A stretch of DNA of 64,000 nt, from positions 28,396,001 through 28,460,000 of the forward strand of contig NW_026262637.1 of assembly GCF_021869535.1 (NCBI RefSeq). The letters run 5' to 3'. Under the pieces are notes generated by a model. The model was not told the DNA's origin and did no database searches. It worked only from the letters and a program-made list of their open reading frames with translations. This document shows positions 12,574 to 35,086 of this stretch, in pieces. The DNA comes from Mytilus californianus (lineage: Eukaryota). Position 1 is the first letter of the stretch; the number at the start of each line of letters is the position of its first letter. The translations under genes and the position numbers were made by a program.

Positions 12574-12705
12574 TCAGTTATTTCGACCATTGTCCTGTAT
12601 CTGTGAGGCCATCCATCTAAAGCCATCACCATATCCAATTTGTTGTACAACACTGCTCATTACTAAGGTACATGGTCTGGTGCTGGATTTATCTTCTGTA
12701 TTTAC
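12574..12705 (-). CDS. SAR1: Sar1-like A exon 6 (RP...GYGDGFRW, stop)
   Basis: 132 nt including TGA; AG acceptor. Confidence 0.93.
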   Translation of the reverse strand, partial: VNTEDKSSTRPCTLVMSSVVQQIGYGDGFRWMASQIQDNGRNN

Positions 12706-15700
12706 CTATAAGTGCAAAATTTGTGAATTTATTTGTTTTACTGGACAGGATATTAATGATATAAAGAAAATTAAAGAAAAGGTATGCTGTAATTTAGTAT
12801 TTAAATTAATGGTTCCCCGCCCATCCACCAAATCCTCGAAAATTGGTTCACCACGAATATTAAGTAATCTACGGTACTTCAATGAGACATCACAAAAACT
12901 TATAATATTTTTCGACACCTATTTGTCTATCTGTTTTATCATGCATACTGTAATAATCAATACTGTCATACTTACATTTTCCGATAAATGCATGTTTATT
13001 CCAAGCTCTTGGATAAGTTGTTCTTTACCATAGCAACCACGTTTGTCTATTTTGTTACCAAGTATAAGGACCGGTACATCGGACACTATTTCGTCTGTTA
13101 GAATACCCTGAATAAAATGTGAACCTGATTAATGAAATAGTGAAAATGATAAATGTGATACATTAATTGTCTACATAATATAGAACTTTTTCTCATAAAT
13201 AGATACATTGGTATGCACATTCCAACGCTGATAAAATAATTGGATATTCAAAATGAACTTCCCATGCTCATATGTCAGTGTATATTTGTTCCGCCTAACA
13301 GAAGTTTCCCTAGAAACTTTGTTATGCATAATGCCATATAATCTGTTCCTGTTGGAACAAATATTCTATACTTTTTATTCCGTTATGAACAAATACTGTA
13401 ATATTTGTTCCAGTGGAAATAATATTCCAGAATATTGTTTTCCATTTGGAACTTATTCTATGAAGGAACTTCTATGTCATGACAATACACTAATTATCTA
13501 TTATAATTATCCACAATTGCTTTTTATACAGAAAGGAAAGACCGCAATTGTAAACTTGTTTACAAGCTAACGGCTTATATTATTCAATTTGAAGGGCATA
13601 AAACGCCTTATAAAACGACATTATAGGATTTTAACTTCTATGACATCAATAGGTTGAAGATTTATTCTATAATGCAAGCAAGACTTTATATACCTTATCG
13701 ATGCATCCGGTCTCCATCAACTTTTCCCTCAGGTTTTTGCTCTTGTTTTTTTTAATGTACGAGTTTTGAATATTGGCAAACTATAGTTACCTTCCATTTA
13801 TATAAGACATGTGGTTCTGAGACCAAGGTATAAGAACGTAAGCAGTTAATTGATAAACTAGTGTTGAGTTTTATGTATATTCGACCTCTTCTATGAAAAA
13901 AGCTTATTAGGACCCTCCGTGCTATGTGAAAATATTTTAAATATTTTTGAATAGATTTCAGAAAAAGCCGGATCAAGTTTAAATTGTTAGATTGTGAAAT
14001 ATTGTAAGCATTGCAGATCTTTATAAACACAGGATTTTAGGTTTAAATATTATAACTATTTTACTGATTCTGACGCATGATTTTTCGTGTGTTTTAGCAT
14101 TATACATGACTTACAGTTATTTCTGCTCTAGCCTCTGGTAATCTTTCAATGTCACACCCATCAACAATAAACACTATACCATCAACTGCTGGGAAATATG
14201 TTCTCCAAACTCGTCGTGCTGTTAAAATAAATGCCACAATTATACACAATTATTGTTAGCAACTACTCATTGTTGAACTCTAACAAATTCTTTCGTATTT
14301 AATTGTATAGACCAGTTAGCAAAAGGAACAGATTATTTTTTATTTAACATGCTAGTTTATTTGACAGCTGAATTGCGTACGTTCTTAAATCTCAAATTCA
14401 AATATTAATTTTGCTAGATATAAATTTTATTATTTGAATGTATAATATTATTCTTTGAAATCTTTTTTTATTTTTCACGAAATTTCTTCAAAAAATCATG
14501 TTATTCTGTCATTAAACATATTTCCCGTACTAAGACAGATGTGTACATTGTGGTTTCATACCGGCCAACTTTTCAAAATCTCCATGGAGGAATTTAAGAG
14601 CAAGAAGAACTAATGCTCCTCTTATATTGTCATAAGTGTTTTTAATCTACTACTATATTATTTGAATGAGTATGTATGTGCTAAAATGCAATTCCTACTC
14701 ATTTGAATGCCTGTTTTGAGGTGTTTAGTTTGTATAATAAAGAATTTCAAAATTCAGGTCAACACCTCTCATTGGGGAAATCCCCCATAAATAGTGATGG
14801 TTGGCAGGTCTGTGATTTATCTCTGTCGTACTTTCTTCTTCCTTAAACCGTCAACCCTTAAATACATGAAATCAATTTTAGTTTCAGATGACTGGAGGTA
14901 TATGTATGTTTTTCAATGGTTTTTATTTGATAATTACCTGATGCATGTCCTCCTAGATCATACGCTTGGAAAGTCACTTTTCCCACCGTTAGCTCCTCCG
15001 ACCCTAGTATATGAATAAATTGAAAAATATATTGTTGGTATTATGTTGTCAATGCAAGAAGATTAAGATGGTATAAACAAATCAATGCTACATTCTGTAT
15101 GTGCTTGTCCCATGTCAGAAGCCTGTAATTAGTGGTTGTAGTTTCTTGCTGTAAAGTTTCATCCTGTTTATCTTTTTTTTTAATTCATTTTTACCTCGTC
15201 TTTTCTGTTCTAGTTTTTATGGATATTTAGTATGTTAACTTAACTTTATTGAAGAATGTTTGGCCTGACACTTGACTTGGACTTTGTATATCTACACAAC
15301 CGTGTGTTTATGTATTAAAACGGAAATATAAAGTATACGTCGATGCAACCTATATGATATTATTAAGAAGAGACAACGCTCCATCCAAGTCACAATGTAT
15401 AAAAAGTTAACAATTATAGGTCAAAGTACTGTAACAAATTCTAAAAACTAGAAGTAACACAGGGTTTTCAAAGTATCTGCCCTGAATCGTCCTCAAACTC
15501 GACAAGTGATAAATGAGTACTTTGGAATCAAACTTAAACTAAATGAATACAAAATTTATGTTTTATTATCGTTTTTACATTGAACCCTCATTGTATAAGT
15601 TGAACAGCTAACAGGTAGCATAGTCTTGAACTTTATCCTATCAAATTCTATGTCTGGCGTAATTAAAATAATATAACAAATTGACAGTCACATCCTATAG

Positions 15701-16779
15701 TAATACTGTGTATATAAACACAACTTACATGGTTGATTTGTTGGTGGATGTTGCACGAGACGTCCATCTTTTATCTTCGACAGAAGGGTTGATTTGCCTG
15801 CGTTATCTAGTCCTATGATGAGCAATTTGCATTTCTTGTTGATGAAACCTACAATGGTAAACTTAATTAATATTGTATTTTGCGAACTCAAGTGAAAGGC
15901 CATTTTTCGTTTCCCTTATATGGTTGTATATCTATATCCTTTTCTTTCGTCACCTCATTCTGCATCAGTGTATTATACTGTTCATAAACTTGAAAAAACA
16001 GAACAGATAATCAGCATGTTAATTAACGAACAAGAACTTTAGAATGTACTTTGTCAATGTGTAGTCTTTTTTTGGCAAATTTGAATTTCAGTGGAATTTT
16101 CTGCGACAATGTTATCCTTAAATTTTGTTGGCTTTTCTGTTTAAATTCCTTTTTTGTTATATAGCTCCTCACGTATTTTAAACATCCTCGGCTTTCATTT
16201 TTTAAGCGTACCTGGGAAATAGCGCTTCGGAAGTACTACATTCAAAAGTCTTATTTTTATACTTTGAGTTAAACAAATGTCTATGTAAATATTCTATAAA
16301 TCAAAGTTATAATTCATAGAAAATTATATCAACGCTGTCAATTCAGACATGTTTATGATGTTTTTATTACTGCGAAAGGTTTTTCCATGATTTAAAACTC
16401 GTATTTAAATGCAATAGCATGATTTGCATTGATCAAATCCTAAAAAAACATGTATTAATCTGGCATTTACGTTAGTTTATTATCAATCCCATTCATAATT
16501 CGCCAATCATCAGTGAACGATAGCGATAACTATATTATTTTATTTCATCTTGAAAAGACTGCTCATTAATGTTCAAAATTTTTGATTCCCTTTCAAAATT
16601 TTAATATCCTAAATCAGCAAGATATTTTAACCAACAAAACAAGATAAAAGAAAAACTTATATTATAATAAATAAACAATTATAACATAATTTTATGATAT
16701 AAAAAATATAAAATATAAAAAATATTATAAACCTACCGAAATACTGCAATATAGTTCTAAACCAGTCAAACAAAAACAT
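12574..16779 (-). CDS. SAR1: Sar1-like small GTPase, paralog A (6 coding exons, 198 aa)
   Basis: Exons (minus): 16737-16779, 15729-15848, 14938-15003, 14115-14218, 12976-13107, 12574-12705; total 597 nt, all introns GT-AG, frame open. Protein: [198 protein letters not shown]. Has the N-terminal amphipathic helix, GLDNAGKS, the Sar1-specific DLGGH, NKID and GYGDGFRW. Confidence 0.95.
12976..13107 (-). CDS. SAR1: Sar1-like A exon 5 (NKID)
   Basis: 132 nt, AG acceptor, gtaagt donor. Confidence 0.95.
14115..14218 (-). CDS. SAR1: Sar1-like A exon 4 (RRVW...GIVFIVD)
   Basis: 104 nt, AG acceptor, gtaagt donor. Confidence 0.95.
14938..15003 (-). CDS. SAR1: Sar1-like A exon 3 (SEELT...DLGGH)
   Basis: 66 nt, AG acceptor, gtaatt donor. 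Confidence 0.95.
15729..15848 (-). CDS. SAR1: Sar1-like A exon 2 (P-loop, switch I)
   Basis: 120 nt, AG acceptor, gtaagt donor; GLDNAGKS. Confidence 0.95.
16737..16779 (-). CDS. SAR1: Sar1-like A exon 1 ([15 protein letters not shown])
   Basis: ATG at 16779; 43 nt; donor gtaggt; nearly identical to B exon 1. Confidence 0.9.
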
Positions 16780-16902
16780 TGTGAATATTTCTTTGCATAC
16801 ATAAAATAATTGATTTAGTTAATGTTGGTATTCTTTATATACACTATTTCTTGTTCTATTTTTAAATATGTCCGTCATTCCAAACATGTAACGGTATCCA
16901 CG

Positions 16903-16933
16903 CTGGCAATGATCGATATGTATAATACACGAC
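16903..16933 (-). promoter_or_regulatory. Conserved upstream block of paralog A (TATA-like TATACAT)
   Basis: 27/31 identical to 33560-33590, at a similar distance (~125-155 nt) upstream of the ATG. Confidence 0.45.
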
Positions 16934-17622
16934 GACAAATCGTTACTATTTAATTTCACAATGGGTATTTTCCTTTCATATAAAGTATTAAGTATAAGGA
17001 AAATAGGTAACAATTAAAAAAACTAAAATCACCTTGATTTATTCATTTGTTATTAATGTAAGTATAGATGTGTTATGAAATCTATTTATAGAACAGATAC
17101 AACACGTTACTTATGATTATAGATTTTGAATATAACACCTTTGAGTAATTTATTTCGTTTGTATAAAAATCAGGAGATGTACGTGGTATGATTGCCAATG
17201 AGACAACTATCAACCAATGTTCAAATGAAGTGGATGTAAGCAATTAAAGGCAACCTAATACGTTACAATACAGTTAAGTTAATAACGTACATCGAACAGA
17301 GGCCTGACAGAATAGTCTAAACATTCTAAGTTAAACATTTGTATTTTAGTGTTACAACTCTTTAAGAGAGGCAGAAGATTGCCAAGGGATAGTCAAACAA
17401 GTCGAAAACAAACTGACAATGCCATGGTAAAAAACAAAACAAAAAACGACAAAAACACAAACAACAAAACTAAAGACTGGCAAAACGATTGTCGAACCCA
17501 CCAAAAACCGGGCTATATGCACAAAAACTACTAGTGTGAAGCTAGCCGTCGATAACATCCGCGTTAATATTCATCTAGTACAAAAGCTTCAAAAAATTAA
17601 ACCAACACGTTATAAATTTAAT

Positions 17623-17664
17623 GCGTCCGAAGCGCTTTTCTGGATTTACCTTCATCAGGAACGC
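17623..17664 (-). ncRNA. Near-intact minimal type I hammerhead motif in a Penelope pLTR-like repeat
   Basis: gcgttc-CTGATGA-aggtaaatcca-GAAA-agcgct-TC^-ggacgc: 6-bp helix I, palindromic helix III; helix II is weak, with an A.A closing pair. Confidence 0.55.
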
Positions 17665-20345
17665 TCAAAGCCGAATATTTGAAAGCCAAGAATGTATAAG
17701 AACCGAAACAGTTGAAGAGCTATATAACCAAAAGTACCTAAAAATAGCCAAATCCATTTAAGGTCAACTTTGCCTGAGGGAATTGAAACCTCAGTTTCCT
17801 TTATAATTTCAAAATTTATAAACGGACAATTTTAGAAATGTTTGTTATAAATCATGTCAGTACCGAAGTACTGACTACTGATCTGATGATACCCTGGGGA
17901 CTAAAAGTCCACCAGCAGAGGTATCGACCCAGTGCTGTAAAAAATGTCCAAATCTATTTTTTTAAAGCCAGAAATGAAAGGAACATGCACGTTTCGGAGC
18001 CACTGGACTTTTTGTTTGAGACAATTACATTAAGTTTGTAGAAGGCAATATTTTATAATTTGGGTCCTCTATGCTTTTCAACGTCGTATTTTATTTGGTC
18101 TTTTAACTGTTTTTGATTCGAGTATTACTGATGAGTCTTTTGTAGACGATACGCACGTCTGGCCTGGTATGTTTCATGAGTTATTTTTACATAAATATCA
18201 AGATTTTTTACACGAAAAACACCTAACAAACAATAACAAAGGAAATCAACATGTGTTCTTCTTCCTAGAACTCATAAGCGCATGCATAATGTGGACTATT
18301 ACAACATGCTATTGTTAATCAAAATTAAAATCTCGGGCGATTTTTTAATGAACATACTATTTGCACATGTTATCATTCACTTATTAACATGGGTGCATCT
18401 TTCAAATCCAGACAAAGCGTTAATGGCACTACAAGATAAGGAACACAATTGGAAAATAAAAAGGATTTCAGTGCACGTGGTACTTTATTCAAAACCACAA
18501 GTGTTCCAAGCCATATAACATTAAACCATCAAAGAAATGCCAACGTCTGATGTGATTTAAAAGTAGTTTATGTCTTCAAATTAACTATTTGCCTTATCCA
18601 CAAATTAATATTTTCTGGATTTGGTTTAACGAATAAAATGAACAAGCCATAAAAAACATATATATTTATACGTCTATCTCTCTATATGAACGTTTTTTCA
18701 AATAAGGATATTTGTAAACTAATATTTTTATTATTAATACAATATTTTTATAATGCAAGAGGCAGCTTTCTTTAGAAACTTGACATATTGTATGCATACC
18801 TGTCTGTTGTTGAAGACTTTATGTTGTCCTCTTGATTATTTTGTGCTTGGGTTGCTGTTTATAACGCATACGTGACACATCCTTGTATTCACATTTATGA
18901 AAGTAAAAAACATAAAATCATATGTGAGGAAACCTTAATGTGTAGATTTTGCTTAAGTTTTTAAAAGTGGTAAACATCCTTTAAAACGACTCAACTATAA
19001 AAACGTATTAACAAACAATTCCCAACTCCAGGCTAAATTCCAAAAGTGGGATGCCCATAACACCTGAAAAATTCAAACGCCTGACTATATTAACCAACGG
19101 AACGAATGGAAAACAACTGTCATATTTCTGACTTGGTACATACATTTTTTGAAGAAAGTAGTGGATTAATAAAAGCAACAGTAGTATACCGCTGTTCAAT
19201 AGTCATTATTCGATTAAGCGAAAACAAATATGGGTAACAAACTAAAACCGAGGGAAACACATCAACTATAAGAGGAAAACAACAGAACAACAGACACACT
19301 GAACTACAACAAAAGCAAACGCCAACATACATAGAAACGGACTATCTGATAACAACTGCCATATTCCTGACTTGGTACAGGACATTTTAAGAAAAAAAAT
19401 GGTGGATTGAACCTGGTTTTATGGCTAGCCAAACCTCCCGCTTATATGGAAGTATATTTCAGTCATAATGAGCCGCTTAAACCTGATTTCATAGCTAGAT
19501 CAACCTCCCACTTGTATGACAGTTGTTTATAGTTCCGTTATGTTCACAAAAATTGGACAATCCACATATACAGACATAATTGGTTAACGTGACACAGATC
19601 ACAGACATACGTGACATACAACTGACTTCAAAATTATCACGACGTGGACAAACTGCTGAATTCAAATCTAGCTATCGTTTGTTTGATTTTTTTTTTGTTT
19701 TTTGCTTTTTTTTTGTCCTTTTTTTATGGTACTTGTCATGAATACAATTTACCTACAGATGTGTTTTCACTATATCTACTCTTTAGTGAACGAACTTTAT
19801 TTTCTTCAACAATGTGGACTCAAAAAGCTTGATTCCGTTTCATATTTAAATTCATCAGTATATTTCAGTCATAATGAGCTGCTTATGTCACCAGCAGTCC
19901 AACATTAAGAGGAAGGAAAAAAATGTTGAACAAACTGAAGCACCAAAATTGCAATTTTTGTATGACTTGACGATTAATAATTGGTCCCACTTGAAATCAA
20001 AATTTGATACAGTCATCCATAACAGCTTGGTCGAGATCTATCTGTTAGTTCTTATACCAATCGAAATATCTAAGCACAAAACCTTTCACAAACAACTAAT
20101 ATAAAGAAAGGTTAAATTTTATAAACATTTATTCTTCAGTAGCAAAACAGACAAAAATAAATAAAAACAATGTATACAAAATAAAATTAATGACAGGAAT
20201 AAAATAATTCTTTGTGAAAATAAATAGTGATGATAACTAACAATAACTCATGATAATTAATGATGAAGATGTATGAACATGATATATACAGAAATGAATA
20301 TAAATATGATATTTAGAGTAATTATCTATATATATATATATATAT

Positions 20346-20956
20346 ACAAGTCTAAATTGAAAACAACGTTCAAACCTATGATTGCGTTGGATAAAAACCG
20401 CAATTTTTATACGTGTGCATGCAAAACAAATTTCTTGTTAGAGGGGTCTAAATACAGCACAAACAACATTTTCCAAAAGACCAAAAAAGTGAAAAAGTAT
20501 ATTTTAACAAAACGCATTTGACTAACAGGTCGAACAACAAATGTTCTTAAACCCTGCTGACTGCCATTGGCGATTGCCAAATAAACGGATCACCGATGTA
20601 ATAAATGGATCTTAAATATAAATTTAATACTAAACAGAAAACAAAAAAACTTGCGGAAAAGATGTTATACCGCAAACAAAAGGTGCAAAGGTTTTTGTAC
20701 ACCATATCCGGATTTCGACAATTAATGTCTCTTCAGTGATGTTAGGAATCGAAACGGTATTTGGAAAGCCATACAATTTACCTCAATTTAGGATAGACTC
20801 CTGAATTTTGAGGAGTCAAAATAGGATGAACGGATCATATAAACCCGAAGGCAAATATAATACAAGCCCAAACGAAAAAATATAAACAAGTCTAAATTGA
20901 AAACAACGTTCAAACCTATGATTGCGTTGGATAAAAACCGCAATTTTTATACGTGT
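20346..20956 (-). mobile_element. Hammerhead-carrying 540-bp monomer plus 71-bp direct repeat (retrozyme / PLE pseudo-LTR)
   Basis: 20346-20416 is repeated at 20886-20956 (period 540); one HHR at 20699-20742; 3' end abuts (TA)n. Confidence 0.75.
20699..20742 (-). ncRNA. Minimal type I hammerhead ribozyme (minus copy)
   Basis: Exact reverse complement of 21128-21171. Confidence 0.8.
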
Positions 20957-21418
20957 TTGAACATTGTTTTCAATTTAGACTTGTTTATATTTTTTCGTTT
21001 GGGCTTGTATTATATTTGCCTTCGGGTTTATATGATCCGTTCATCCTATTTTGACTCCTCAAAATTCAGGAGTCTATCCTAAATTGAGGTAAATTGTATG
21101 GCTTTCCAAATACCGTTTCGATTCCTAACATCACTGAAGAGACATTAATTGTCGAAATCCGGATATGGTGTACAAAAACCTTTGCACCTTTTGTTTGCGG
21201 TATAACATCTTTTCCGCAAGTTTTTTTGTTTTCTGTTTAGTATTAAATTTATATTTAAGATCCATTTATTACATCGGTGATCCGTTTATTTGGCAATCGC
21301 CAATGGCAGTCAGCAGGGTTTAAGAACATTTGTTGTTCGACCTGTTAGTCAAATGCGTTTTGTTAAAATATACTTTTTCACTTTTTTGGTCTTTTGGAAA
21401 ATGTTGTTTGTGCTGTAT
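20955..21418 (+). mobile_element. Inverted partial copy of the 540-bp HHR monomer
   Basis: 464-bp inverted repeat of 20452-20915 (one mismatch seen); ends in (TA)n. Confidence 0.8.
21128..21171 (+). ncRNA. Minimal type I hammerhead ribozyme
   Basis: acatca-CTGAAGA-gaca(ttaat)tgtc-GAAA-tccgga-TA^-tggtgt: intact core, 4-bp helix II, palindromic helix III, AUA triplet, 6-bp helix I with one G-U; predicted cleavage after 21165. Confidence 0.82.
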
Positions 21419-21496
21419 ATATGTATATATATATATATATATATACATCTTATATTAGTATCGTTGTGCAAATCTCTAGACTTATATATATATATC

Positions 21497-21692
21497 ATAT
21501 ATAACCAGTCTAAAAGGGTACAACATCACCAAAAAATGACAATAAACGAACACATGTAACTATAAATATTTCGGATAACAGATATCCTTCATCAGTATGA
21601 GCACGATGTCTTATCCGAAATATTTATAGTTACATTTGTTCGTTTATTGTCATTTTTTGGTGATGTTGTACCCTTTTAGACTGGTTATATAT
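21497..21692. repeat. 82-bp-arm palindrome with a hammerhead-like core at the apex
   Basis: Arms 21497-21578 and 21611-21692, one mismatch, 32-bp loop; minus-strand CTGATGA-a-ggata(tctgt)tatcc-GAAA at 21569-21595. Confidence 0.8.
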
Positions 21693-21767
21693 TATATTTT
21701 GTAGTGTACTGTATCATATTTATATGATCCATCGCCCCGTAAGATTTATCGTTGGCTATTATTCAGT

Positions 21768-21809
<42 letters not shown>

Positions 21810-21811
<2 letters not shown>

Positions 21812-22008
21812 ACATTGTTTTTCGACCTGTTAGTCAAATGCGTTTTGTTAAAATATACTTTTTCACTTTTTTGGTCTTTTGGAAAATGTTGTTTGTGCTG
21901 TATTTAGACCCCTCTAACAAGAAATTTGTTTTGCATGCACACGTATAAAAATTGCGGTTTTTATCCAACGCAATCATAGGTTTGAACGTTGTTTTCAATT
22001 TAGACTTG
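21810..22008 (+). repeat. 3' fragment of the 540-bp HHR monomer between (TA)n tracts
   Basis: Matches the reverse complement of ~20346-20540. Confidence 0.8.
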
Positions 22009-22040
22009 TATATATATATTTGTATATATATGAAAAAAAT

Positions 22041-22253
22041 GATTAATTGATTGATTGTATGTGTTCAACGCCACTTTCTGTCAGTTTTACTTGGAGGAGG
22101 AAGCCAGAGTGCCCGAAGAGAATCACCTTCCTTCGGCAAAATAACTGACGTTCCTAATCAATTAAGATCGGAGTCGAACGCACCTGCCACGTGAGTGTCA
22201 CATGCTAGTGATCCAGTAGATGAACTACTTAGACTTGGCCACCGAGGCCCCGC
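22041..22253 (-). mobile_element. tRNA-derived SINE-like element
   Basis: Minus strand gcggggcctcggtggccaagt (A-box-like) ... ggtgcgttcgactcc (B-box-like) ... (caat)n tail. Confidence 0.65.
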
Positions 22254-22255
22254 TA

Positions 22256-22420
22256 TTAAGAAGATGTTACTGTCACAGTGGTTGAATTGTTATTTATTCG
22301 GTCTTCTTCATGAATTTGTGTGGCCATCCATTTCAAACCATCGCCATAACCTGTTTGGTGTAAAAGACTGCTCATTACTAAGGTACATGGTCTGATTCCG
22401 GACTTGTCTTCTGTATTTAC
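22256..22420 (-). CDS. SAR1: Sar1-like B exon 6 with S/T-rich tail
   Basis: 165 nt including TAA; AG acceptor. Confidence 0.9.
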   Translation of the reverse strand, partial: VNTEDKSGIRPCTLVMSSLLHQTGYGDGLKWMATQIHEEDRINNNSTTVTVTSS

Positions 22421-25400
22421 CTTTGAATGAATGGAGAATTTTTGAAATTTTACAGCGATTTAATGAACGGAATATAAATGAGACAAAGTAAAATATAAGA
22501 GTAAATGTACTGTAATTGGCTGAAATATCATCGAGTACCATTTAAATGCAAGAACGATTTTTTTTTAAATTACCAGTTTTGTATAATTCTTTAGAGTGAC
22601 CTTTCGGTAAAATTGTCGTTTGTCCTAATAACAATAATGTAACAAATAACTATGTAACTCATCACACAATGTATTATGACAAAGTATTGTTTTTAATCAT
22701 AAGAATTCTGAAATTCGGTATGCACAGTAGAATGACCAGTCTCGTAACGTTTGGAGATCAAGAATTTCCTCGCGTTTTGTTTGAGGTTTTTCGTCTTCAG
22801 TTGTAAAATGACTAAAGTATACGGAATGATCTTCTTTCGGTATAATCCGGATCATAACGATCAATGTGCCAAATATATTTAAAAAAAACCTTCACAGAAC
22901 TGCCAAAAAGTCTAAGGTCAACTTTGCCGGAGATATATACGACTTTATAAGTATCATAATGCATGAATTTTGAGGAAGAGTCGAAAGTAAGTGATTATTT
23001 TGCCCGTAAAGTATAGCTTACACTTTCACTGATTAGTGTTTTAACAAGTTTAACAAAGCAATCGCATCTATCTGTTTAACTTATAGTTATTTGTGTCATA
23101 GTTATTAAATTTTGTTTAATACTCATTTGTAAGAAGTTTGATATTCATTGTCTAGGTCGCTAACATTTTCGACATGTTTGTATAAATGATACGAAAAGAA
23201 ATAATAGATAAAATATTGCAAATGATTCCTCTTTGCTGCTGGTTTTTCTCGATTCTTGTGTTATCTTATCTTTGAACTTGAATATTTCAAAATATTATGA
23301 AAATAATTATAATCTTATTGCCTATTTATTCGTTTAATCAACATTATGGATTACTTTATGATTCTGAATAAGAAAAACTAAATGTGCGTGTCTGTGTCAG
23401 CCTACATTTACATTAGGACGTTTCGGTATTTAGGTCCGTTATACTGGGATTTTCTCACTCAGAATATTCAATCGTGCATACTAAAACATCGGTACTTATA
23501 TTTTCATATTATCGATAGTTATCGATAGTTATCCTAACATTTTCATAATATCGATCCTTTTCATAATGTTTACGTAAACTTACACTGTTAGATAAATGTT
23601 GATCTATTCCAAGCTCTTTGATAAGTTGTTCTTTACCATAGCAACCTCTTTTGTCTATTTTGTTACCAAGAACAAGAACCGGTACATCAGACACATCTTC
23701 ATCTGTTAGGATACTCTGAATAAAAAGTGAACTTGAGTTTTCACATTAGTCTTCAATTATTTTAAATTTAGGAATGTGTCTTCCCCATGCATAGTTCTGT
23801 TTTTTTCCATGTTTGGCTGTTTGATTTTTTGATTTTATCATCTCTTCAACGGATTTGTTTGGCCTTCAGCATCGCTGAAAGGACATTTATTGTCAATAGG
23901 CGAGTCTGGTGCAGTAAAATATGTACTTTTAATGTTATTATAACAATTCGTCTATACCTCTGTGGTTGTACTATAAATCCAGCTCAAGATGGCAGTACTT
24001 CGATAAGAATATATGGATATTGTTTTATTGGAATTTGCTGTTATAAAATTTTTCTATTGCGTCATTTTAAATTCAGGAATGTTAACTCGTCATACATGGC
24101 TCTGATTTCTGGTCCTGGTTCGGCTTTACTTTTGGTACTTTTTTACCGAGCATCAATGAAGATCTCGAGACATAACTTGTCGAAATACGCATCTGGAGCA
24201 GTAAAATTGGTATCATTTGTGTTATAACTACCACTAGATCATTGCTTATTAGGTTTCGAAATTCAATTTATGATTGCCTCGAGCATCACCGAATAAACAG
24301 GTTTTGTCAAAACGCGCATCTGGTACCGTTAATGTTATTACCTTCAAAGTTGATTAAGACTAGTATTTCTCATAAAATGTTTATTTGGTTTGAATCGTCT
24401 GTGTGCTTATAATTGAATATTCTTAGTAATAAATACATATATTATCGAACTTCATACACTGTTTTTGTCATTGTAAGTGTCTGTGTTCCTCAAAGCCGTC
24501 TTAGTCGAAAATGGTCTTTAAAACAAAGAATACGGTATTTATCTTGTTGAGAAGAATTTAGTTTTTCCGAATAAAAATGAAAAAATAGCATTTTACTATT
24601 TGTCCTTTTCTTCTGGGAATAAATTCCATCAAGGCCTTGAAAAAAGATGCAAATTTGTCTAAGACATATTTTAGACAAAGTACATAGATATTGAAGGCTA
24701 CGTGGATCACTTTAACCGCATGACACAAATAACCAAAAAGTCAATTCCGAAGTTATGATAGTTTGTTTTCTGCGTTTATCGTTTGATGACAGTCGAGATT
24801 TCAGATTTAAAATGAATACTAGTAGTCTTTATTCTGACTTTGTAAGCACAGTGTTTAAACTTAAATATTATGAATATTTTATCACCCCAGCGACTTGATC
24901 TTCCATGTGCTTGAAGTAATATTACATTGCTTACTTTCATTTTTTTGCCAAGCCGCTGGTAGTCTGGAAGTTATTTTTCATGTATATGAACTAGTATTTT
25001 ATTACTTACAGTTAATTCTTGTCTCGCCTCTGGTAGTGACTGAGAGTCCGAAGCATCAACAATAAACACTATACCTTTAACTGCTGGGATATATCTTCTC
25101 CAAAAACTTAGTGCTGTAATAATTCTTGGATCATAACAATTGACTGTTCATTAATATGTAGAATGTGCAGGTTTAACTTTGTTCGAAACATGTAAGCTTC
25201 AAATTTAAGATTCAATGACTTGAAAATCACTTGCGATTCATTGAGTGACTAAAATGTATATGTCATAGCCGTAACAATGAACTGTGGTTTTGTCATACTG
25301 TTTTCAACTGCTTTTCTCTCATAGCGGAATTTTGCGTCCGTAATTCGGTGTATCGAGCTCGATTCCGTTGATATTATAAAAAAATAGCGTAAAAACTGTA

Positions 25401-28400
25401 CACGTTGCCGGTATTCTGTTAGGAAAATAATTTGTTTTAACAGGTTTATTACATCTATTCAATAATTAAATTGAAATAAAAAAAAGCAAGAATTTTTCAA
25501 TTTAATGCATTAAAGAAAAGGCTGATATTTACTTAAGAGTTACAAAATTACAAAATGCAATGATAACAAAACGTTTATGCTTTAACAATTTTTCGTTTCG
25601 GTTGGCTGTAAAGAAATATTCACAGATGACCACGAATATTTCCGCTTGTTTTCCTCGATTTTGACATCTCTGAGTGTGCACTTACCATGAACAACACGAT
25701 GGCGTGCAATTAGTGTTTTAACATAATCTATTTACTATTCCGAAGCACCTGATATCAACCTCAGTTTTTGCGGGTCATTAAATTTTGTTGCTCAGTCTTT
25801 AGTTTTTTATGTAGTGTTTTCTATATAAACTTGTTCGTCTTTTCGTCGTTATACGTTTTTTGCCATGGTGTTGTCATTGTTTTGATTATCGCCTTGGTAT
25901 CTTTCGCCTGTTAACCGCCTCGGTGGTCTCGTGGTATCGGTGTCGCTTCGAGTGCGTAAGGTTGCGGGTTCAAAATCAGCCGGGTCAAACCAAAAATTTG
26001 AAAATTGGTATTTGCTGCTTCTCCACTAAGCAAGCGGCATTTAGGAGTAAGTGCAAAAACTGGTTGGCTCGGAGTAAGAATAATTTTTCCGAGGTTGAAA
26101 TGTCTTCCTGCGGACTGTTTGCGTGTGTGCTTTGTATTTAGTGTCTATATGCCATTTTGTTTTTCTTTTTTGATATAGTTGTTTGTTTTTACAGTGATTA
26201 ACATTATAACACAATGTTGACTGCTGTATCCCAATTTTTGACAGTTTTACCCATTATATCTGTTTGTTTTGCTCACACATTGTTGTCAATATTATGGCAT
26301 TCTATGCGATTGTCATACAACTGAGAGGTTTAGCTAGCTATAAAACCAGGTTTAATCCACCATTTTCTACATAGTAAAATGCCTGTACCAAGTCAGGAAT
26401 ATGACAGTTGTTTTCCATTCGTTTGATGTGTTTGAGCTCTTGATTTGCCATTTGATAAGGAACTTTCCTATTTACTTTTCACCTTGTGAACTAGTACATT
26501 AACAAATTGACTCAGCGTGTCGGTCTATTGAACTATTCATTCGATTTTTTAAGGACGCCATCACGAGTTGTTTGACTGACCGTTATGGAATATCTGTTTC
26601 ACAGATGACGACGGATATGTTCCAATCGTCGTAACCACAACCTCGTCCTCCTTTTCCCCGAATGTGACCTACCGAATTAAATTTATAACCGGGTTTGTAC
26701 TTGCATGAGCAACACGACGGGTACCAAATGTGGAGCAGGATCAGCTAAACTTTCCGGAGCACTTGAGATCATCTCCGGATTTAGTGGGGTTCCTGTTGCT
26801 CAGTCTTAGATACTGCTGTTTCTTTTTTTTTTCTTTTTTGCCATGGCGTTGTCATTTTTTTTCGACTTATGAGTTTGAATGTCCCTTTGGTATCTTTCGC
26901 CTCTCTTCTAGTACAAAGCAGGGTTTATATTTATATCAATTATCATGTTCTCGTCCGGAATATGCTTTATTTTCCACTGGACGTAAAGCAGCCATCCCTC
27001 CATCATCTTCCGCCTCTTTTTGCATATTGTCGTAGCTACAATCAGGTCTTCTTTTCTTAATCGAACCCGACTTATCACCGAATTTTCAATGATCATTAGC
27101 AATACGACGGTTGGCACCAGTTGATCAAGATTTGCTTATCCTACCGGTCATCTTAGATCCTCCATAGTATTTGTTTGGGTTCTAGTTGGTCAGTCTTGAA
27201 TTTTCTGTTTTGTGCTTTGTATACCATTATTTTCCAATGGAATTGACTGTTTTCCTTCAACTCACGATTTTTGATTGTCATTTGTACCTTCTTTTTCACA
27301 GATTTTAACTGCGCTATGATAATTACCTAATATGTGACCTCCTAGATCATACACTTCAAATGTCACTTTACCAACTGTAAACTCTTCTGACCCTACAAAA
27401 TTAATTAAACAAGTGAAACTGCGAGCTACTGCTCACTGATGATACCCCCGCCGCAACTGGATAATTTTAATGAGATTCACTTGTTGTCGAGTATCGAGTT
27501 GCGAGTTACAAAAGTCGAGTTGCGAGTTACAAAAGTCGAGTTGCGAGTTACGAAAGTCGAGTTGCCAGTTACGAAAGTCGAGTTGCCAGTTACGAAGGTC
27601 GAGTTGCGAGTTACGAAAGTCGAGTTGCGAGTTACGAAATTAGATTTGCGTGAAAATGGGGAAAACTATTTTAATTTTTTAGTGTACCTCTTTAACATTT
27701 TTGAAAGATGATTGCTTATAGAATTGTATACAGTATTGTTGATTCTTTTTGTTGTTAGGACTTCATCGTGTAAAAAAAATCGAATGAATTGCTTACATAA
27801 TCACTACGCAAAGTATGGTTATTTTCTGAAGAAACAGATAGCCTTTTGAAATACAGCGGATGGCTTGGAGTTTAATGAATTATTATTAAATTTCATCGCT
27901 AGCACCTTCATATTAAACGTAAAGTGAGATAGCAACTAAACGATATAGGTATAAAAAGATGTGGTATGAGTGCCAATGAGACAACTCTCCATATATGTAA
28001 AATACCTCTTCTGCAGATTTCGTTAAGAGTGGGCTCTTTGGGGCAGCTGCAGAGGCAATATTTGTTAGTGACGCTCAAAGTTGTGGACGTTTAAGTTAAA
28101 TATGTGAAGGGGGAAGGTTGAGCCCTCGTAAAACCTGTTTAACCCCGCTGCATTTTTGCGTCTGTCCTAAGTCAGGAACCTCTAGCCTTTGTTGGTCTTG
28201 TATATTTTTTTTATTTTGGTTCATCTATATGTTTTGGAGCATAGAATGGCGTCCATTTTCTTGATCTAGTGTACATAGTGTTTCGGGGCCTGCTCGGGGC
28301 TGCCTATGGGTGTGGGATTTCTCGCTGTGTTGAAGACCCATTGGTGGCCTTGGGTTGACTTATATATTTTGTTTGGGTTGTTGTCTCTTTGACACATTCC

Positions 28401-31400
28401 CCGTTTCCATTCTTTATTCTATACATGTAGCTGTCAAAGATACTTTTGTAAAAGAGACAAAAGACGCAGTTTTGGAATATGTAACTTCTTTCTAAAAAAC
28501 GGTTAATCATACAAAAATGTACAATACCAAGCTGATATCTGAAACTACAACATTTGCATCAAGGCTGCATGCAGGTAAAAAAGTAAACTTGTGACAGACA
28601 AGGCTTCCGTGCTCATACCGTAAAAACACACGCCATAACATTCCTTAAAACTGTTCCTTTATTTTTTGTAACAGTGGTGTAGCTAATTGTAGAATAACGT
28701 CTTTCCAAATTAAAAAACAAAATCCATATTATGATCTCCTATGCCAGGAAGTTACCATAATGCCATAGAAAGACATCTATAGCATGCTTATTTTTGCGTT
28801 GTAGTATTCAGATATATATACATACATTGCACAACTCGATTATTAACTCTCCACTTCGGGTTGAATCACAAAGTTAACAAAGTTCAAAATTATTCAATTT
28901 ATCACATAAAGCACATAGCATATCACATTTCAGACTAATTCATGAGATATTTTCCTAAGTTAAATGTGCAATTGTGCCTATATCACCCTAAACCTTTGCG
29001 GAAGACGAAGCTTTAGCACTTGGTATGCTAATGAATATCCTTTATTCAAGCGTCACTGATGAATCTTGTAAATACAAAACGCGCGTCTGGCGTATAAAAT
29101 ATTATAAGCCTGTACCTTTGATAAGTATTTACTTTAGGCCTAACACAGTGCAATATTATGTGAGATGTCGATAATTTGCAAGTATATTTCATTTGTCTAC
29201 ATAATTTATTTTCTTATGCTTGATTTGTTCAGCACGGTATACGTTTTTTCTTGTATCACAGTATATCCTGTTTTATTTTAGCAAATGAACAATGTCGCTC
29301 TCATGAAAGAAATTTAAGCGTGCGTGACTTTGCAACAGAAAGGCTCTTATAAATAAGTATCACATAACTCTTTCAAATCCTGCAATCAAAATATCGGGAC
29401 CCTTCCTCATGCAGTGTATAACTAAGGTCGGGTACATGTATGTTTTGTTTATTAAATGCGAAGTAAACCTGAAAATTCTGTTTCAAAAATCAGACGACAC
29501 GACCGTTTATACAATTATATATAATTCTTAAGAAATTAGAGAAACATAATATGTTTGTAACTCGCAAATCGACCTTCGTAACTCGCAACTCGACCTTCGT
29601 AACTCGCAACTCGACCTTCGTAACTCGCAACTCGGCCTTCGTAACTCGCAACTCGACTTTTGTAAATCGCAACTCTACTTTTGTAACTCGCAACTCGGCC
29701 TTGGTAACTCGCAACTCGACCTTCGTAACTCGCAACTCGACTTTTGTAACTCGCAACTCGGCCTTGGTAACTCGCAACTCGACCTTGGTAACTCGCAACT
29801 CGACCTTCGTAACTCGCAACTCGGCCTTCGTAACTCGCAACTCGAATTTCGTAACTCGCAACTCTACTTTTGTAACTCGCAACTCGGCCTTAGTAACTCG
29901 CAACTCGACCTTCGTAACTCGCAACTCGACTTTTGTAACTCGCAACTCGGCCTTGGTAACTCGCAACTCGACCTTCGTAACTCGCAACTCGACCTTCGTA
30001 ACTCGCAACTCGACTTTCGTAACTCCCAACTCGACTTTTGTAACTCGCAACTCAGCCTTTTCAACTCGTAACTTGCAACTCGACGATAAGAAACCATCAA
30101 TTTGAATAGTGTAAAAATATGCAAGTGTTCGGTAAACAGGGAGTTAATGAGTGATGAATCTGAAAACGCATCACACGGTATAGCTGACTTATATAAACCC
30201 TGAAACCAAATTTCAGAAATCCTAATGATGTAGTTCATGAGAAAGATAAGACGAAAAATATTCATGGGACGGATGGACGGACTGACGGATGGACGGATGG
30301 ACGGACGGACAGAGGTGAAACAGTATACCCCCACTTTTTTAAAGCGGGGTATAATTACAAATTATTTTGATCAGGACCTTGTGTTATTTGTTGTATGTCT
30401 GTTGTTGTCGAATAATTTGTGTATTGGTGTTGATGAGGTCTGATGTATTGTCGTATATTATTCGTGATTCCTGTTATCCTTTTAATGTAATATATACTAA
30501 GTTCATTATGTTATCATCATTGACCTTTTTTGTACTGTTGACCAGGTAATCTTGTGCATTTCAATATAAGTGGGTTGAGGTTGCTGGGTGTATTTGGAAT
30601 CTGTACAACTGTCAGCATGAATATAAAAACATTAAACTTCATAAAAATATTTAGAAATTCATTATGTCTGCGCTCCATCGAATTGTGCTTCTGCGCTCCA
30701 TACAAATTGTGTTTGTATGACGCAAACACTAATACCTCGCTGGTGTTTGCCCCCGATGTAAAGGGGTATAGTTTCTCAATATATATATATATAACACCAT
30801 AATTAAGAAATGAATGCTTCTTTTTGTAATTTTATTGGGATGTAAAAGTGTTGAACGAAGCACATTTTGTTTGAAGCGCGGAAGCGCCTCATTCTAAAAA
30901 TGCAGGCGCGTAGCTACGTTTACGTCAAAACGCCCGGGCGTGCACATGAATTTTGGAGGGGAAAATATTTTGATCCAGATAAATTAAAGGAACTGTTTAA
31001 AGCACACGAGCAATTGTAATGTTTTCTTTGATGACTGAAGATAAAAGTGACGAAATTTACTTTTTATTCAAATTTGTTCATTTTCTGTCAAACTTTGAAT
31101 CTACTGTGCATATTCTACTCAGATTACTATTGTTTAAAGCAATTTGGTATCTGTTGGGATAAAACATCTGTGGCTTGAATTTTTATGTTACACCTGACCA
31201 TCTATGAAAATTAATTATTTCATGCGTCCATTAACGAAATTTTCCCGTAAAAAGGTGTGAAAATTATATGAAGTTAAAATAATTAATAGAACTTGCTTTT
31301 TTTTCCTATTTTTATACAGTTTTGATTTTTTGTCGATTGATTTGGTTTACCCAACATCTCCTTTTAAACATATTCTAGAGTAACTGGTTTGGACATTTTT

Positions 31401-33443
31401 CTCAAAAAACAAAGGACCATTATATTCCATATCAAGACAATGAAATTAACATGAAAAAAACCCAAATCAAACTTTAAAAGAGCGGCGAAAGATATCAAAG
31501 GGATATTCAAACTCATCAGTAGAAAACAAACTGACAATGCCATTTCAAAAGACGAAAAACGACGAAAAGACAAACAACATTACATAAAAGACAACATAGA
31601 AAACTAAAGACTTGACTATACGAACACCACCTAAAACTGGGGGTGATTTCAGGGTTCCAGAAGGGTAAGCATATCCTGTTTCACATGCGGCACTCGTCGT
31701 GTTGCTCATGTAAGTAAAAACTTGGTGATAAGTCTAATTCGGTAGGTCATATTCGAGGAAAAGAGGACGCCATTGTGGCGTCATGGAACACGTCCGTCGT
31801 CATCAGTGAAACAGTCAACCAACTCGTGATAGCGATCATAAAATTTCGAAGGAATTCTTTCAACTTCACCACTTGGAAGTTTTGGTTTAATAGCTTCTTT
31901 GTAAGTAGCAATCTCATTCAAGGAAATCATGATGAGAAATGCAAGTTCTGAAATATCGTATCAACTGGGAGATATATACTCCATATGCAGGTTCTACTGG
32001 AATGTTGCTACATAGAAATGGAAATTTCACAACTGTGAAGCTGAAATCATCTCTTAAGTAGTAAAGTGTTTTGTTCTCAACCGACCAAGTATGTTGCTAT
32101 TGGTGAATTTTGAATGACAGAAATGGTATCTTTTTCACGATAACGCGTGAGCTTATGGGGGTTTCGCCCCCTACCCGGAGGTCCTCTGCCCAGGGTTCGC
32201 TGGGGGGCGGCCATCAGACCACTCGCCGAGGTTCGTGCGTACACTTAAAAATGGCCTTGCTACGCCACTGAAATGTGTGCACGATCAACACTTTCACAAT
32301 CCTATCAAATTACTTAAAGAAGCATTCATTTGTTATAATTACATTTGTATGCTCAGAACATGAAAAAAACGTTTTATCAAGTTTTTCTTTTCTTTATCTG
32401 TGCACTTTTTTGTGGAAACACGTGTCATCACGAATGTAACATTTCATTTTGATATGAAGATTAATTGTTGTTAGCCAATCAAACTAACGGATTCTCGTGA
32501 AGCATACATGTAATGTAATTATTCACTGATAAAGATTGGCAGAGAAAGCGGGAAAATACTTATATATGTACAACTTACAGGGATGATTTGTTGGTGTATG
32601 TTGAACTAGACGTCCATCTTTCAGCCGACTCAGGAGAGTGGATTTTCCTGCATCGTGTAGTCCTAGGATAAGCAAGTTGCATTTCGTGTTAATAAAACCT
32701 GCAAGGGTGTATAAACTTATATAATTGTGATATTGGAAATTCAAGGGTTAGACTATACATCATTGATTGGTATTACTACATTGTTTAAAGAATAGAAAGG
32801 ATACTCATCATGCTGTTTTAATGTACCTGCAGAGGTGGAAGGAAGGGTGTTTTTCCCAAAAACTGAATATATACATTTTTTGGACTATTTTATGTAAATC
32901 GTGAAAAACATGATATGTTTGGGGGGATCAATGGGGGCGTATCCCCTCCACCCCGCCCACCCCCCATCTTAAGCGTGTACAAGTACTTCTATGTTTAATT
33001 AACAGAACATTTTTTCAAATAAAATTCCGTACACTTATCATTTTTAAACAATTTGTAAGGCCTCCATTTACTTCCCTCTACATAAGCAGCAACTCTTGCA
33101 CAACGATCCGCTTAAAATGATTTAAATTAATATATCCTTGAAAGAGCTTTACATATGTGAAAACTCTTTGATTCCGATGGCGCTCATCAGTGTAATAAAA
33201 CTTTAGAAACATTTCCAACTAATGTCTTGTTAATCATTTTGGTTTTCGATAAAATCAGCTCATTTATTTTCAAAATTTCAATCGCTTGCAAAAGTGGCGG
33301 TGAACAATATGAACCTCATATCTTATTGATAAACCCAAAACAAAAGCAAATAGTTAATAGTCATAATATTGTTTATGGAAAAGTCACCACAAATACATAC
33401 CAAAATACTGCAGTATACTTCTAAACCAATCAAACAAAAACAT
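22256..33443 (-). CDS. SAR1: Sar1-like small GTPase, paralog B (6 coding exons, 209 aa)
   Basis: Exons (minus): 33401-33443, 32579-32698, 27327-27392, 25010-25113, 23584-23715, 22256-22420; total 630 nt, all GT-AG, frame open. Protein: [209 protein letters not shown]. Confidence 0.93.
23584..23715 (-). CDS. SAR1: Sar1-like B exon 5 (NKID)
   Basis: 132 nt, AG acceptor, gtaagt donor. Confidence 0.93.
23868..24326 (+). repeat. Three decayed hammerhead-like motifs in tandem (intron 4 of paralog B, antisense)
   Basis: agcatc..gaca(n5)tgtc..tctgg pattern at 23868-23912, 24149-24199 and 24282-24326, each with core mutations. Confidence 0.6.
25010..25113 (-). CDS. SAR1: Sar1-like B exon 4
   Basis: 104 nt, AG acceptor, gtaagt donor; GIVFIVD. 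Confidence 0.93.
25914..26130 (+). mobile_element. tRNA-derived SINE
   Basis: ccgcctcggtggtctcgtgg (A box) ... gcgggttcaaaatc (B box), followed by the ggtatttgctgcttctccactaagc central block. Confidence 0.65.
26480..26900 (+). mobile_element. Penelope-like element 3' fragment (RT C-terminus and UTR)
   Basis: Decayed (GR)HHEL..DRYGISVSQMT-type coding plus UTR; homologous to the reverse complement of ~31480-31840. Confidence 0.6.
27327..27392 (-). CDS. SAR1: Sar1-like B exon 3 (SEEFT...DLGGH)
   Basis: 66 nt, AG acceptor, gtaatt donor. Confidence 0.93.
27480..30090. mobile_element. Foldback element with inverted 21-bp satellite arms
   Basis: Termini cttgttgtcgagt / actcgacgataag (11/13 IR). 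Left array of ~7 units (27494-27639, gtcgagttgcgagttacgaaa); right array of ~25 units (29554-30085, gtaactcgcaactcgaccttc) in the opposite orientation. Confidence 0.65.
29554..30085. repeat. 21-bp tandem repeat (~25 copies)
   Basis: gtaactcgcaactcg(a/g)c(c/t)tt(c/t/g) units directly visible. Confidence 0.97.
30903..32270. mobile_element. CAG...CTG TIR element with a 5-bp target duplication, carrying a PLE fragment
   Basis: caggcgcgtagc / gctacgccactg ends; AAATG at 30898-30902 and 32271-32275. Confidence 0.6.
31480..32090 (-). mobile_element. Penelope-like RT C-terminal fragment
   Basis: Minus strand RDDFSFTVVKFPFLCSNIPVEPAYGVYISQLIRY, then UTR. Confidence 0.8.
32579..32698 (-). CDS. SAR1: Sar1-like B exon 2 (GLHDAGKS)
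   Basis: 120 nt, AG acceptor, gtaagt donor. Confidence 0.93.
33401..33443 (-). CDS. SAR1: Sar1-like B exon 1 ([15 protein letters not shown])
   Basis: ATG at 33443; 43 nt; donor gtatgt. Confidence 0.9.
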
Positions 33444-33559
33444 TATGAAGCTCCATGTCCAAATACGAAATAATTCACTGTTTACTTTGTATGTGTATTT
33501 TCCTGTCTATTTTTAAAATATGACAGGTAACGTTTAAATATAACATGAAAGGATTATCC

Positions 33560-33590
33560 CTGGTAATGGTCAATATTTATAATACACGAC
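33560..33590 (-). promoter_or_regulatory. Conserved upstream block of paralog B containing TATAAAT
   Basis: Minus strand gtcgtgtatTATAAATattgaccattaccag; homologous to 16903-16933. Confidence 0.5.
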
Positions 33591-33844
33591 AAAACATCTT
33601 TACCTGTTAGGTACAAACAGGCGAAGTACCTTGTTTTTTGTTTAAGTATTCAAAATTATTATTTGAAAGAATTGAAAAGGAGTAACTTATTTTGTCATTT
33701 TTGTCATATAATCCATTTTAAATATAGTCTGAATAGTCCGCATTTTAATATTAATAGATTGTTAGACCATGAAAACAGTCTATATATAAACATATTTGAC
33801 ATTTTCATACTTAATTTCCAAGTGAGTAATGATCTATGAAATGA

Positions 33845-34483: not shown

Positions 34484-35086
34484 TACCTTTTAAAACTTAT
34501 ATACCTCCCTATTTTGATTACACAGATCCACCTATTATTTCGTATACATACAAAAAAAACCTAGCAGAAGTTTGATTTTTAATTTACATCAGTAACATAA
34601 GTTGTCTGTGTAGAAAATAATAATCCTCTAACTTGAGACTGAATCGTCGAATTTCAGATATGATCCCTATGGTCATTTTATTACGGGAGACCTCAATATC
34701 GTTCAAGACTGAGAGGTTAAAAACGTTTTGAAAAAGGACAAAAAAATCGTCCTCCATCAACAATGGAAACAACTTGTCGTCAGGTCATAAAAAGTAAAAT
34801 CATTATAGCAAAAATACCGAAATCCAAGGAAAATTCAAAACGGAAAGTCCTTTATGAAATGGCACAATCAAAAGCTCAAAAACATTAAACGAATGAAAAA
34901 CAACTGTAATATTCCTGACTTGGTACAGGCATTTCCTTATGTACAAAATGGTGGATTGAACCTGGTTTTATGACCAGCTAAACTTCTCACTTGTATGACA
35001 GTGCTCTTTCATCGTATTTTATAAATTGGTGTAAACGGACAAAATCGAATGAATAATCTCTTGATCCTTATTAAATATATATATAT

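Follow-up and report, generated by a model that had tools for sequence, protein, structure and literature searches.

A stretch of 64,000 nucleotides (nt) from Mytilus californianus (assembly GCF_021869535.1, contig NW_026262637.1, positions 28,396,001 to 28,460,000 of the forward strand; hereafter the window, with positions counted from its first letter) carries two complete genes for Sar1-like GTPases, here called gene A and gene B, which motif scans and six-frame translation place on the minus strand with six coding exons each. Sar1 is among the most conserved of trafficking proteins, and to our knowledge non-vertebrate animals are usually credited with a single Sar1 gene. In this report, we describe A and B as members of an old, bivalve-wide and fast-evolving Sar1 paralogue that is kept beside the housekeeping Sar1, the sole Mytilus-specific step being the duplication which separated A from B.

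Gene A (12574–16779, minus strand) has a coding sequence of 597 nt for a protein of 198 amino acids (aa), and the translation of its spliced model matches the RefSeq protein exactly. Its first exon (43 nt, 16737–16779) supplies the ATG and a hydrophobic/amphipathic N-terminus and ends at a GTAGGT donor, while exon 2 (120 nt, 15729–15848) encodes beta1, the P-loop GLDNAGKS and switch I with QHPPT, and exon 3 (66 nt, 14938–15003) the interswitch and AYDLGGH, which holds Walker B and the catalytic His. The remainder of the protein is divided among exon 4 (104 nt, 14115–14218; switch region), exon 5 (132 nt, 12976–13107; NKID, the G4 motif) and exon 6 (132 nt including the stop, 12574–12705; G5 and the C-terminal helix). 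Gene B (22256–33443, minus strand; coding sequence 630 nt, 209 aa) likewise encodes a protein identical to the RefSeq one, and spliced RNA contigs support its model at three junctions. Its exons are found at 33401–33443 (exon 1, 43 nt), 32579–32698 (exon 2, 120 nt, with an altered P-loop, GLHDAGKS, in which Asp34 has become His), 27327–27392 (exon 3, 66 nt, VYDLGGH), 25010–25113 (exon 4, 104 nt, with an altered switch II, ALSFWRRY, in which Arg83 has become Leu, Arg84 Ser and Val85 Phe), 23584–23715 (exon 5, 132 nt, NKID) and 22256–22420 (exon 6, 165 nt including the stop, with a longer C-terminal tail, …EEDRINNNSTTVTVTSS).

All ten introns of the two genes run from GT to AG and lie at the same positions, in phases 1,1,1,0,0, so that exons 1–5 measure 43/120/66/104/132 nt in A and B alike, with only the last exon differing (132 nt in A vs 165 nt in B). 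Neither frame contains a stop or a frameshift, and the two proteins share 148 of 198 aligned residues (74.7%) in a global alignment. The original prediction, made from the letters of the window, had proposed two six-exon genes with identical intron positions, GT-AG sites, undisrupted frames and this number of identical residues, and all of this is borne out; its description of the pair as hidden was mistaken, since both are already RefSeq models named "GTP-binding protein SAR1-like [Mytilus californianus]", protein A being identical to XP_052089058.1 and protein B to a second RefSeq protein (P0003), with both genes on a scaffold of 31.7 Mb. At the DNA level, A and B can be aligned solely over the exons, their immediate flanks and some 220 nt around the start codon. 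The 5′ flank of A (16731–16946, minus strand) aligns with that of B (33395–33603) at 70% over 225 nt, which indicates that the duplication included the start region. No third copy was found in the window by tblastn with all Mytilus paralogues or by blastn with gene A, both of which returned only A and B. A weak tblastn match to exon 5 of A at 10893–10804 on the minus strand (40% over 30 aa, E 0.04), considered as a further copy, is treated as chance, there being no other exon-like matches nearby.

The closest relatives of protein A are other Mytilus proteins, followed by sequences from Sinanodonta, Potamilus, Pinctada, Ostrea, Saccostrea, Pecten, Argopecten, Ylistrum and Solemya, and outside Mytilus these carry labels such as 'SAR1-like', 'uncharacterized' or 'hypothetical'. 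A Mactra protein labelled 'SAR1a' (P0093), considered as the canonical bivalve Sar1, was rejected in that role, as it belongs to the divergent group and extends it to the heterodonts; a search seeded with it added Mercenaria, Mya and Dreissena. The group is recognized by a signature in which QHPPT stands for the canonical QHVPT and AYDLGGH for TFDLGGH, with a further characteristic segment where canonical Sar1 has KLVFLGLDNAGKT. In a maximum-likelihood tree of 71 rows (LG+C20), the paralogue is represented by 26 rows, all of which group in a single clade (support 100/100, stem 0.62). This clade spans protobranch (Solemya), pteriomorph, unionid and heterodont bivalves, that is, every major group sampled, and its inner branching follows bivalve phylogeny roughly, with the Pteriomorphia (mussels, oysters together with the pearl oyster, and scallops) apart from unionids, heterodonts and Solemya. 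The canonical proteins of those same species fall in a tight metazoan Sar1 cluster. Within Mytilus, the A/B split (100/99) had taken place before the M. edulis complex parted from M. californianus and M. coruscus, and within that complex the B lineage was duplicated again. The clade also appears confined to bivalves in wider searches: three of 1.84 billion representatives strongly preferred the paralogue profile (from Saccostrea, Solemya and Mytilus), and among 529 fetched proteins the full signature occurred in bivalves only, plus two Logan sequences nested in the clade. Thus, of the earlier proposal of a lineage-specific, fast-evolving Sar1 subfamily apart from the housekeeping gene, the rapid evolution and the separateness stand, while a restriction to mussels does not, the subfamily being present as far from them as Solemya.

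Two further divergent copies were noted in other species. The gastropod Nucella lapillus has a Sar1 protein of 195 aa (P0032) with an end branch of 0.55, which keeps GKTT and groups with canonical Sar1, and which is therefore taken as an independent, lineage-specific duplicate outside the bivalve clade. In M. edulis, an extra copy of 218 aa (P0008; L005, 17145–23043) lies 2.3 kb downstream of the A orthologue, with exons of 43/135/63/134/132/150 nt and a degenerate G3 motif, YEVGAY for YDLGGH. This copy is a derived pseudo-GTPase, or else it is decaying and was rescued by the gene predictor, and no counterpart of it is present in the M. californianus window.

The housekeeping Sar1 of M. californianus was identified by cluster membership as a protein of 193 aa (P0341, XP_052069540.1/XP_052069541.1), which is identical in M. 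californianus and other Mytilus species. Its gene lies on another scaffold than A and B (locus L002 on JAKFGE010000007.1, 117.9 Mb, assembly GCA_021869535.1) and has exons of 43/120/66/104/132/117 nt, with its five introns at the positions and in the phases found in A and B. The separate canonical locus that had been anticipated is thus present, and neither A nor B is the sole, ordinary Sar1 of the species. Pairs of canonical isoforms seen in scallop, oyster, hard clam and unionid (P0299/P0346, P0340/P0353, P0322/P0323 and P0045/P0060) differ solely within residues 16–49, which correspond to exon 2, one version reading …LLHMLKDDRMAQHVPT… and the other …LLSVLKEGH.xQPVPT…. This suggests that canonical Sar1 in those bivalves uses a mutually exclusive pair of second exons; a tblastn search of the canonical locus of M. 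californianus, extended by 10 kb flanks, found only one exon 2.

The membership of A and B in the Sar1 family is supported by several lines of evidence. The Pfam Arf profile (PF00025) matches both proteins over residues 8–191 (3e-48 for A, 1.5e-43 for B), and a sequence search of the PDB retrieves Sar1 chains at E-values of 2e-56 to 6e-41, against about 4e-23 or weaker for Arf and Arl. An AlphaFold2 model of B (predicted local distance difference test score, pLDDT, 75.7; predicted template modelling score, pTM, 0.74) has Sar1 chains as its top Foldseek matches, the best being 1m2o_B, yeast Sar1 in the Sec23-Sar1 complex (TMt 0.92). Against a vertebrate SAR1B, A shows 50% identity (97/195), in keeping with the figure of about one half estimated earlier by eye for human SAR1A, and against the canonical Sar1 of its own species 51% (98/192), B sharing 46% with the latter. 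The hydrophobic N-terminal motif MFLFDWF, the switch I Thr, the His of DLGGH, NKID and the G5 Ser are all present, as had been claimed. Both proteins begin with MFLFDWF and have no Gly2, and hence no myristoylation site. This motif aligns with F3-I4-F5-D6-W7 of the hamster protein, including the essential F5, and a helix is predicted over residues 3–13 in the B model. The N-terminal hydrophobic STAR motif, Phe5 especially, is required for activation by Sec12 (PMC2150902). A STAR-like motif is present in A and B, with membrane insertion as its predicted role. The catalytic His of DxxGH, which is Gln in Arf and Ras, is invariant in an alignment of 19 clade sequences and is replaced in only one of the 26 paralogue rows, by Tyr, in the 218-aa copy of M. 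edulis.

Against this common framework, a considerable number of otherwise fixed residues have changed. Among the 105 columns with almost no variation across 41 canonical Sar1 sequences, 69 are kept in A and 62 in B, so that 34–41% are altered. Residues kept throughout the clade include Gly32, Gly37, Lys38, Thr40, Gln52, Pro55, Thr56, Asp75, Gly77, Gly78 and His79, followed by Trp86, Tyr89, Pro91, Ala92, Asp101, Asn134, Lys135, Asp137, Arg171, Ser179, Gly185-Tyr186-Gly187 and Trp192, and the motifs G1, DxxGH, NKxD and GYGxxxRW are retained clade-wide together with Thr56. The clade-wide changes are T39S (which still provides a P-loop hydroxyl), F30I/L31I, V54P, L57x, T60R/W, T73A, F74Y, K87R, S143G, R148I/S/V and R183Q, to which the B lineage of Mytilus adds D34H, R83L, R84S, V85F, R107S, F190L and R191K. 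Asp34 is kept in A and in all members outside the Mytilus B lineage, and is lost in B and the other four B-lineage sequences. This residue is described as invariant in the Sar1 family and as hydrogen-bonded to His79, and the corresponding Asp-to-Gly change in yeast is reported to stop GTP loading and budding (Huang et al., PMC2150902). In the structure of yeast Sar1 with Sec12, contacts are made by Asp32, Phe72, Arg82, Lys85/Asp86 and Tyr87 (bioRxiv 10.1101/2020.10.08.331793), which are residues 34, 74, 84, 87/88 and 89 in human numbering. A keeps the equivalents of Asp32, Arg82 and Tyr87, has the conservative replacements Tyr for Phe72 and Arg for Lys85, and carries Thr at Asp88, while B is without Asp34 and Arg84, the yeast Asp32 and Arg82. 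The B-lineage changes, as read from the alignment, strike residues of documented role.

Both genes are under purifying selection, with a constraint on B that is roughly threefold weaker than that on A. The ratio of non-synonymous to synonymous rates (dN/dS, or omega) is 0.11 for A against its M. edulis orthologue (dS 0.27), 0.33–0.40 for B against B of M. galloprovincialis (dS 0.29–0.33), 0.29–0.36 for B against the 218-aa copy of M. edulis (dS 0.33–0.45), and 0.20–0.28 for A against B (0.35 by one method; dS about 0.6). The proportion of non-synonymous differences (pN) is below that of synonymous differences (pS) in all four comparisons, with Fisher p-values from 1e-11 to 4e-5. Between bivalve orders, canonical Sar1 is 88–96% identical, whereas the paralogue is 42–63% identical, reaching 77% for the closest pair, Mya and Dreissena.

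Expression was assessed by aligning one raw RNA sequencing run and three contig sets to positions 22100–27500 of the window, which cover exons 3–6 of B. Spliced records join 22420 to 23584, 23715 to 25010 and 25113 to 27327, with CT..AC ends on the plus strand, and these are introns 5, 4 and 3 of B. The junction 25113|27327 is crossed by contigs of the sets X1–X3, which are three runs from two samples of one study, and by one raw RNA read of run X8; 23715|25010 is crossed in X1–X3, and 22420|23584 in X3. One contig of 661 nt, long enough for the whole B coding sequence, contains exons 6, 5 and 4 and another 239 nt, a length that fits exons 3, 2 and 1 plus a short leader. Gene B is thus transcribed, and three of its modelled splice junctions are confirmed. 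Very high depth was also seen inside intron 3 of B, at 26263–26443 and 26806–26986 (a summed contig depth of up to about 38,000 in X1, and a depth of 48–63 in the raw RNA reads). These segments recur at other places in the window, for example at 35000–34829, 19448–19348 and 31855–31475, and so resemble interspersed repeats that are transcribed, not a portion of gene B.

The origin of the paralogue can be traced through its gene structure. The exon sizes 43/120/66/104/132 and phases 1,1,1,0,0 are also found in M. edulis A and M. galloprovincialis B, and because all five intron positions and phases are common to the paralogue and canonical Sar1, the paralogue arose from canonical Sar1 by duplication at the DNA level. 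This duplication had taken place by the time of the common ancestor of living bivalves. In eight bivalves (Solemya, Sinanodonta, Mactra, Mya, Mercenaria, Dreissena, Pecten and Ostrea) the paralogue and the canonical gene lie on contigs of equal size, which we read as the same chromosome. In Pecten maximus, for which coordinates were compared, both genes occupy one strand of LR736838.1, about 18 Mb from each other (42.03 Mb and 24.03 Mb). In Mytilus, the paralogue and the canonical gene occupy separate chromosomes or scaffolds. The unconstrained tree lets the clade branch near the base of metazoan Sar1, away from molluscan Sar1, a placement that fits long-branch attraction, given the stem of 0.62. 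Considering distribution, introns and linkage jointly, we prefer a scenario in which Sar1 was duplicated on the bivalve stem and the copy then diverged rapidly.

Taken together, these data lead us to regard A as a Sar1-type switch with specialised kinetics or context and B as a more derived copy, both being functional members of the bivalve-wide paralogue, a reading to which we assign a probability of roughly 60%. In such a scheme, the hydrophobic/amphipathic N-terminal segment of A (MFLFDWF…) would enter the membrane of the endoplasmic reticulum (ER) upon GTP loading by Sec12, the switch regions would then recruit Sec23/24, and GTP would be hydrolysed with His79 under the control of Sec23 as GTPase-activating protein. 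Since about one third of the nearly invariant canonical positions have changed, the kinetics, partner preference or tissue use of A may be unlike those of housekeeping Sar1. Because Asp34, Arg83/Arg84/Val85 and Arg107 are replaced in B, this copy probably differs in how it is loaded with nucleotide and in how far it depends on Sec12, and it may work as a switch that is slower or under other regulation.

Several points weigh against this interpretation. Core coat components do not usually evolve as fast as this paralogue, and its rate could reflect other partners. The Walker B residue is Tyr in 26 of 26 clade members, the typical Sar1 Phe being absent there and Trp being the residue of SarB and Arf. 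Tyr is at the same time a weak discriminator, as it also occurs in 26 otherwise canonical Sar1 sequences of the set. The role of A in the coat protein complex II (COPII) is suggested by the conservation of its motifs, and the RNA support covers B, A being judged functional from its sequence. The status of X1–X3 as RNA was guessed by a tool, and the lack of introns in the contigs speaks for it. With regard to origin, an approximately unbiased (AU) test rejected a tree in which the paralogues join canonical bivalve Sar1 (p=0.023), under a constraint that also forces monophyly of canonical bivalve Sar1, unlike the free tree. A tree joining them with canonical lophotrochozoan Sar1 was not rejected (p=0.33; control p=0.25). 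The AU tests are indecisive, and the tree alone neither places nor dates the duplication.

The same observations on rate and residues are the substance of the main competing explanation, which we consider possible and clearly less probable, namely that the paralogue is a neofunctionalised switch outside COPII which retains the Sar1 fold and GTP cycle with new partners or a new membrane. Such a variant might serve a germline-, immune- or secretory-tissue-specific trafficking step, and this would explain the persistent fast change, to which belong the altered third or more of the nearly invariant positions in both A and B, the low identity between most bivalve orders relative to canonical Sar1, the clade-wide substitutions in switch I and the interswitch (V54P, L57x, T60R/W, T73A and F74Y), and the loss from the B lineage of two residues that contact Sec12 in yeast. 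It is opposed by the conservation of the STAR-like motif, Thr56, His79, Arg83/84 (outside B), Trp86, Tyr89 and GYG..RW, which is the set expected for engagement of Sec12 and Sec23, and by the fact that the nearest structures are those of Sar1 in COPII complexes.

A stronger form of the preferred reading, in which the paralogue has acted since the origin of bivalves as a second, separately regulated ER-exit switch with its own kinetics or partners for a specialised COPII-type carrier, and B has become a Sec12-independent or hydrolysis-altered regulator after the loss of Asp34 and Arg84, is speculative and in our view unlikely. If it were true, the cargo could be large or abundant secretions, such as shell-matrix, byssal or gamete coat proteins. 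The idea of bulky secretions derives from an analogy with vertebrate SAR1B, which is specialised for large cargo such as chylomicrons. Vertebrates resemble bivalves in having retained a second Sar1 gene beside the first. Their pair stems from an independent duplication, as turtle SAR1B groups with deuterostome canonical Sar1 in the tree, and SAR1A and SAR1B are about 90% identical, unlike the bivalve paralogue, which is old, class-wide and only about 50% identical to its canonical partner. Compared with canonical metazoan Sar1 (XP_052069540.1, human SAR1A/SAR1B), A and B have the same fold, length class, six-exon structure and intron positions and phases, and share with it the missing Gly2 site, the STAR-like N-terminus, GxxxxGK(S/T), Thr56, DxxGH, NKxD and the GYGxGFRW helix. 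They differ in their overall identity of 46–51%, in evolving several-fold faster, and in the clade-wide and additional B-lineage changes.

That A and B are merely redundant duplicates, a recent tandem copy drifting towards pseudogenes or held for dosage, is largely refuted and very improbable. The threefold faster non-synonymous evolution of B could be taken in that sense, as could the third copy in M. edulis and M. galloprovincialis, with its shifted exon borders and degenerate DxxG motif. However, both open reading frames and all ten splice sites are intact at a dS of about 0.6, pN is below pS with high significance in both lineages, B is spliced in RNA, and members of the clade were retained throughout the bivalve radiation. 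The pattern that pseudogenes would give, a dN/dS near 1 with no junction-spanning reads, is not seen for B, and the dN/dS of A is far below 1. Least probable of all is that A and B descend from SarB, an ancient eukaryotic paralogue, and not from a Sar1 duplication of bivalve age; SarB is likewise Sar1-like, always accompanied by a bona fide Sar1 and placed outside the tight Sar1 clade, in line with the basal position of our clade in the free tree and the rejected bivalve-only constraint, but the published description gives it a Walker B Trp and some introns not common to Sar1, and reports it from protists (Vargova et al. 2021, PMC8358228), whereas the clade described here has Tyr, Sar1 introns only, known members in bivalves only and a location read as the canonical chromosome in eight of them, and the identity was rejected on these grounds.

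While the genes themselves had already been predicted by the NCBI pipeline, the recognition of the clade, its age and its origin are new. A search of the literature on Sar1 in bivalves, Mytilus and oyster found no paper recognizing the clade, the matches being unrelated work on SAR11 bacteria and one proteomics preprint in which the paralogues are not separated, and the main text of the ARF-family survey (PMC8358228) does not mention molluscs. A whole class of animals has thus kept, since its origin, a second Sar1 which is about 50% identical to the first and evolves several times faster with its catalytic machinery retained. It offers COPII biology a natural experiment on which Sar1 surfaces can change with the switch preserved, and is a candidate regulator of the heavy secretory output of molluscs. 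In Mytilus, A and B allow a comparison, within one genome, of a conserved copy with one whose P-loop and switch II have changed.

As for other features of the window, Rfam and tRNA scans gave nothing at the gathering threshold, hammerhead families included. Between A and B, at 20000–21800, no hammerhead match reached even E<=1, and Rfam reported sub-threshold microRNA-like hairpins only, the best being MIR8562 at 20795–21075 (110.7 bits vs a gathering score of 211 bits), and these fit a long inverted repeat. Overlapping reading frames of 156–186 aa on both strands at 29490–30334, in intron 2 of B, have weak and scattered Pfam matches and are probably low-complexity or tandem-repeat DNA rather than a gene. 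A frame of 199 aa at 41916–42515 on the plus strand matches DDE_Tnp_4 (PF13359, 2e-13) and represents a fragment of a Harbinger/PIF-type transposase.

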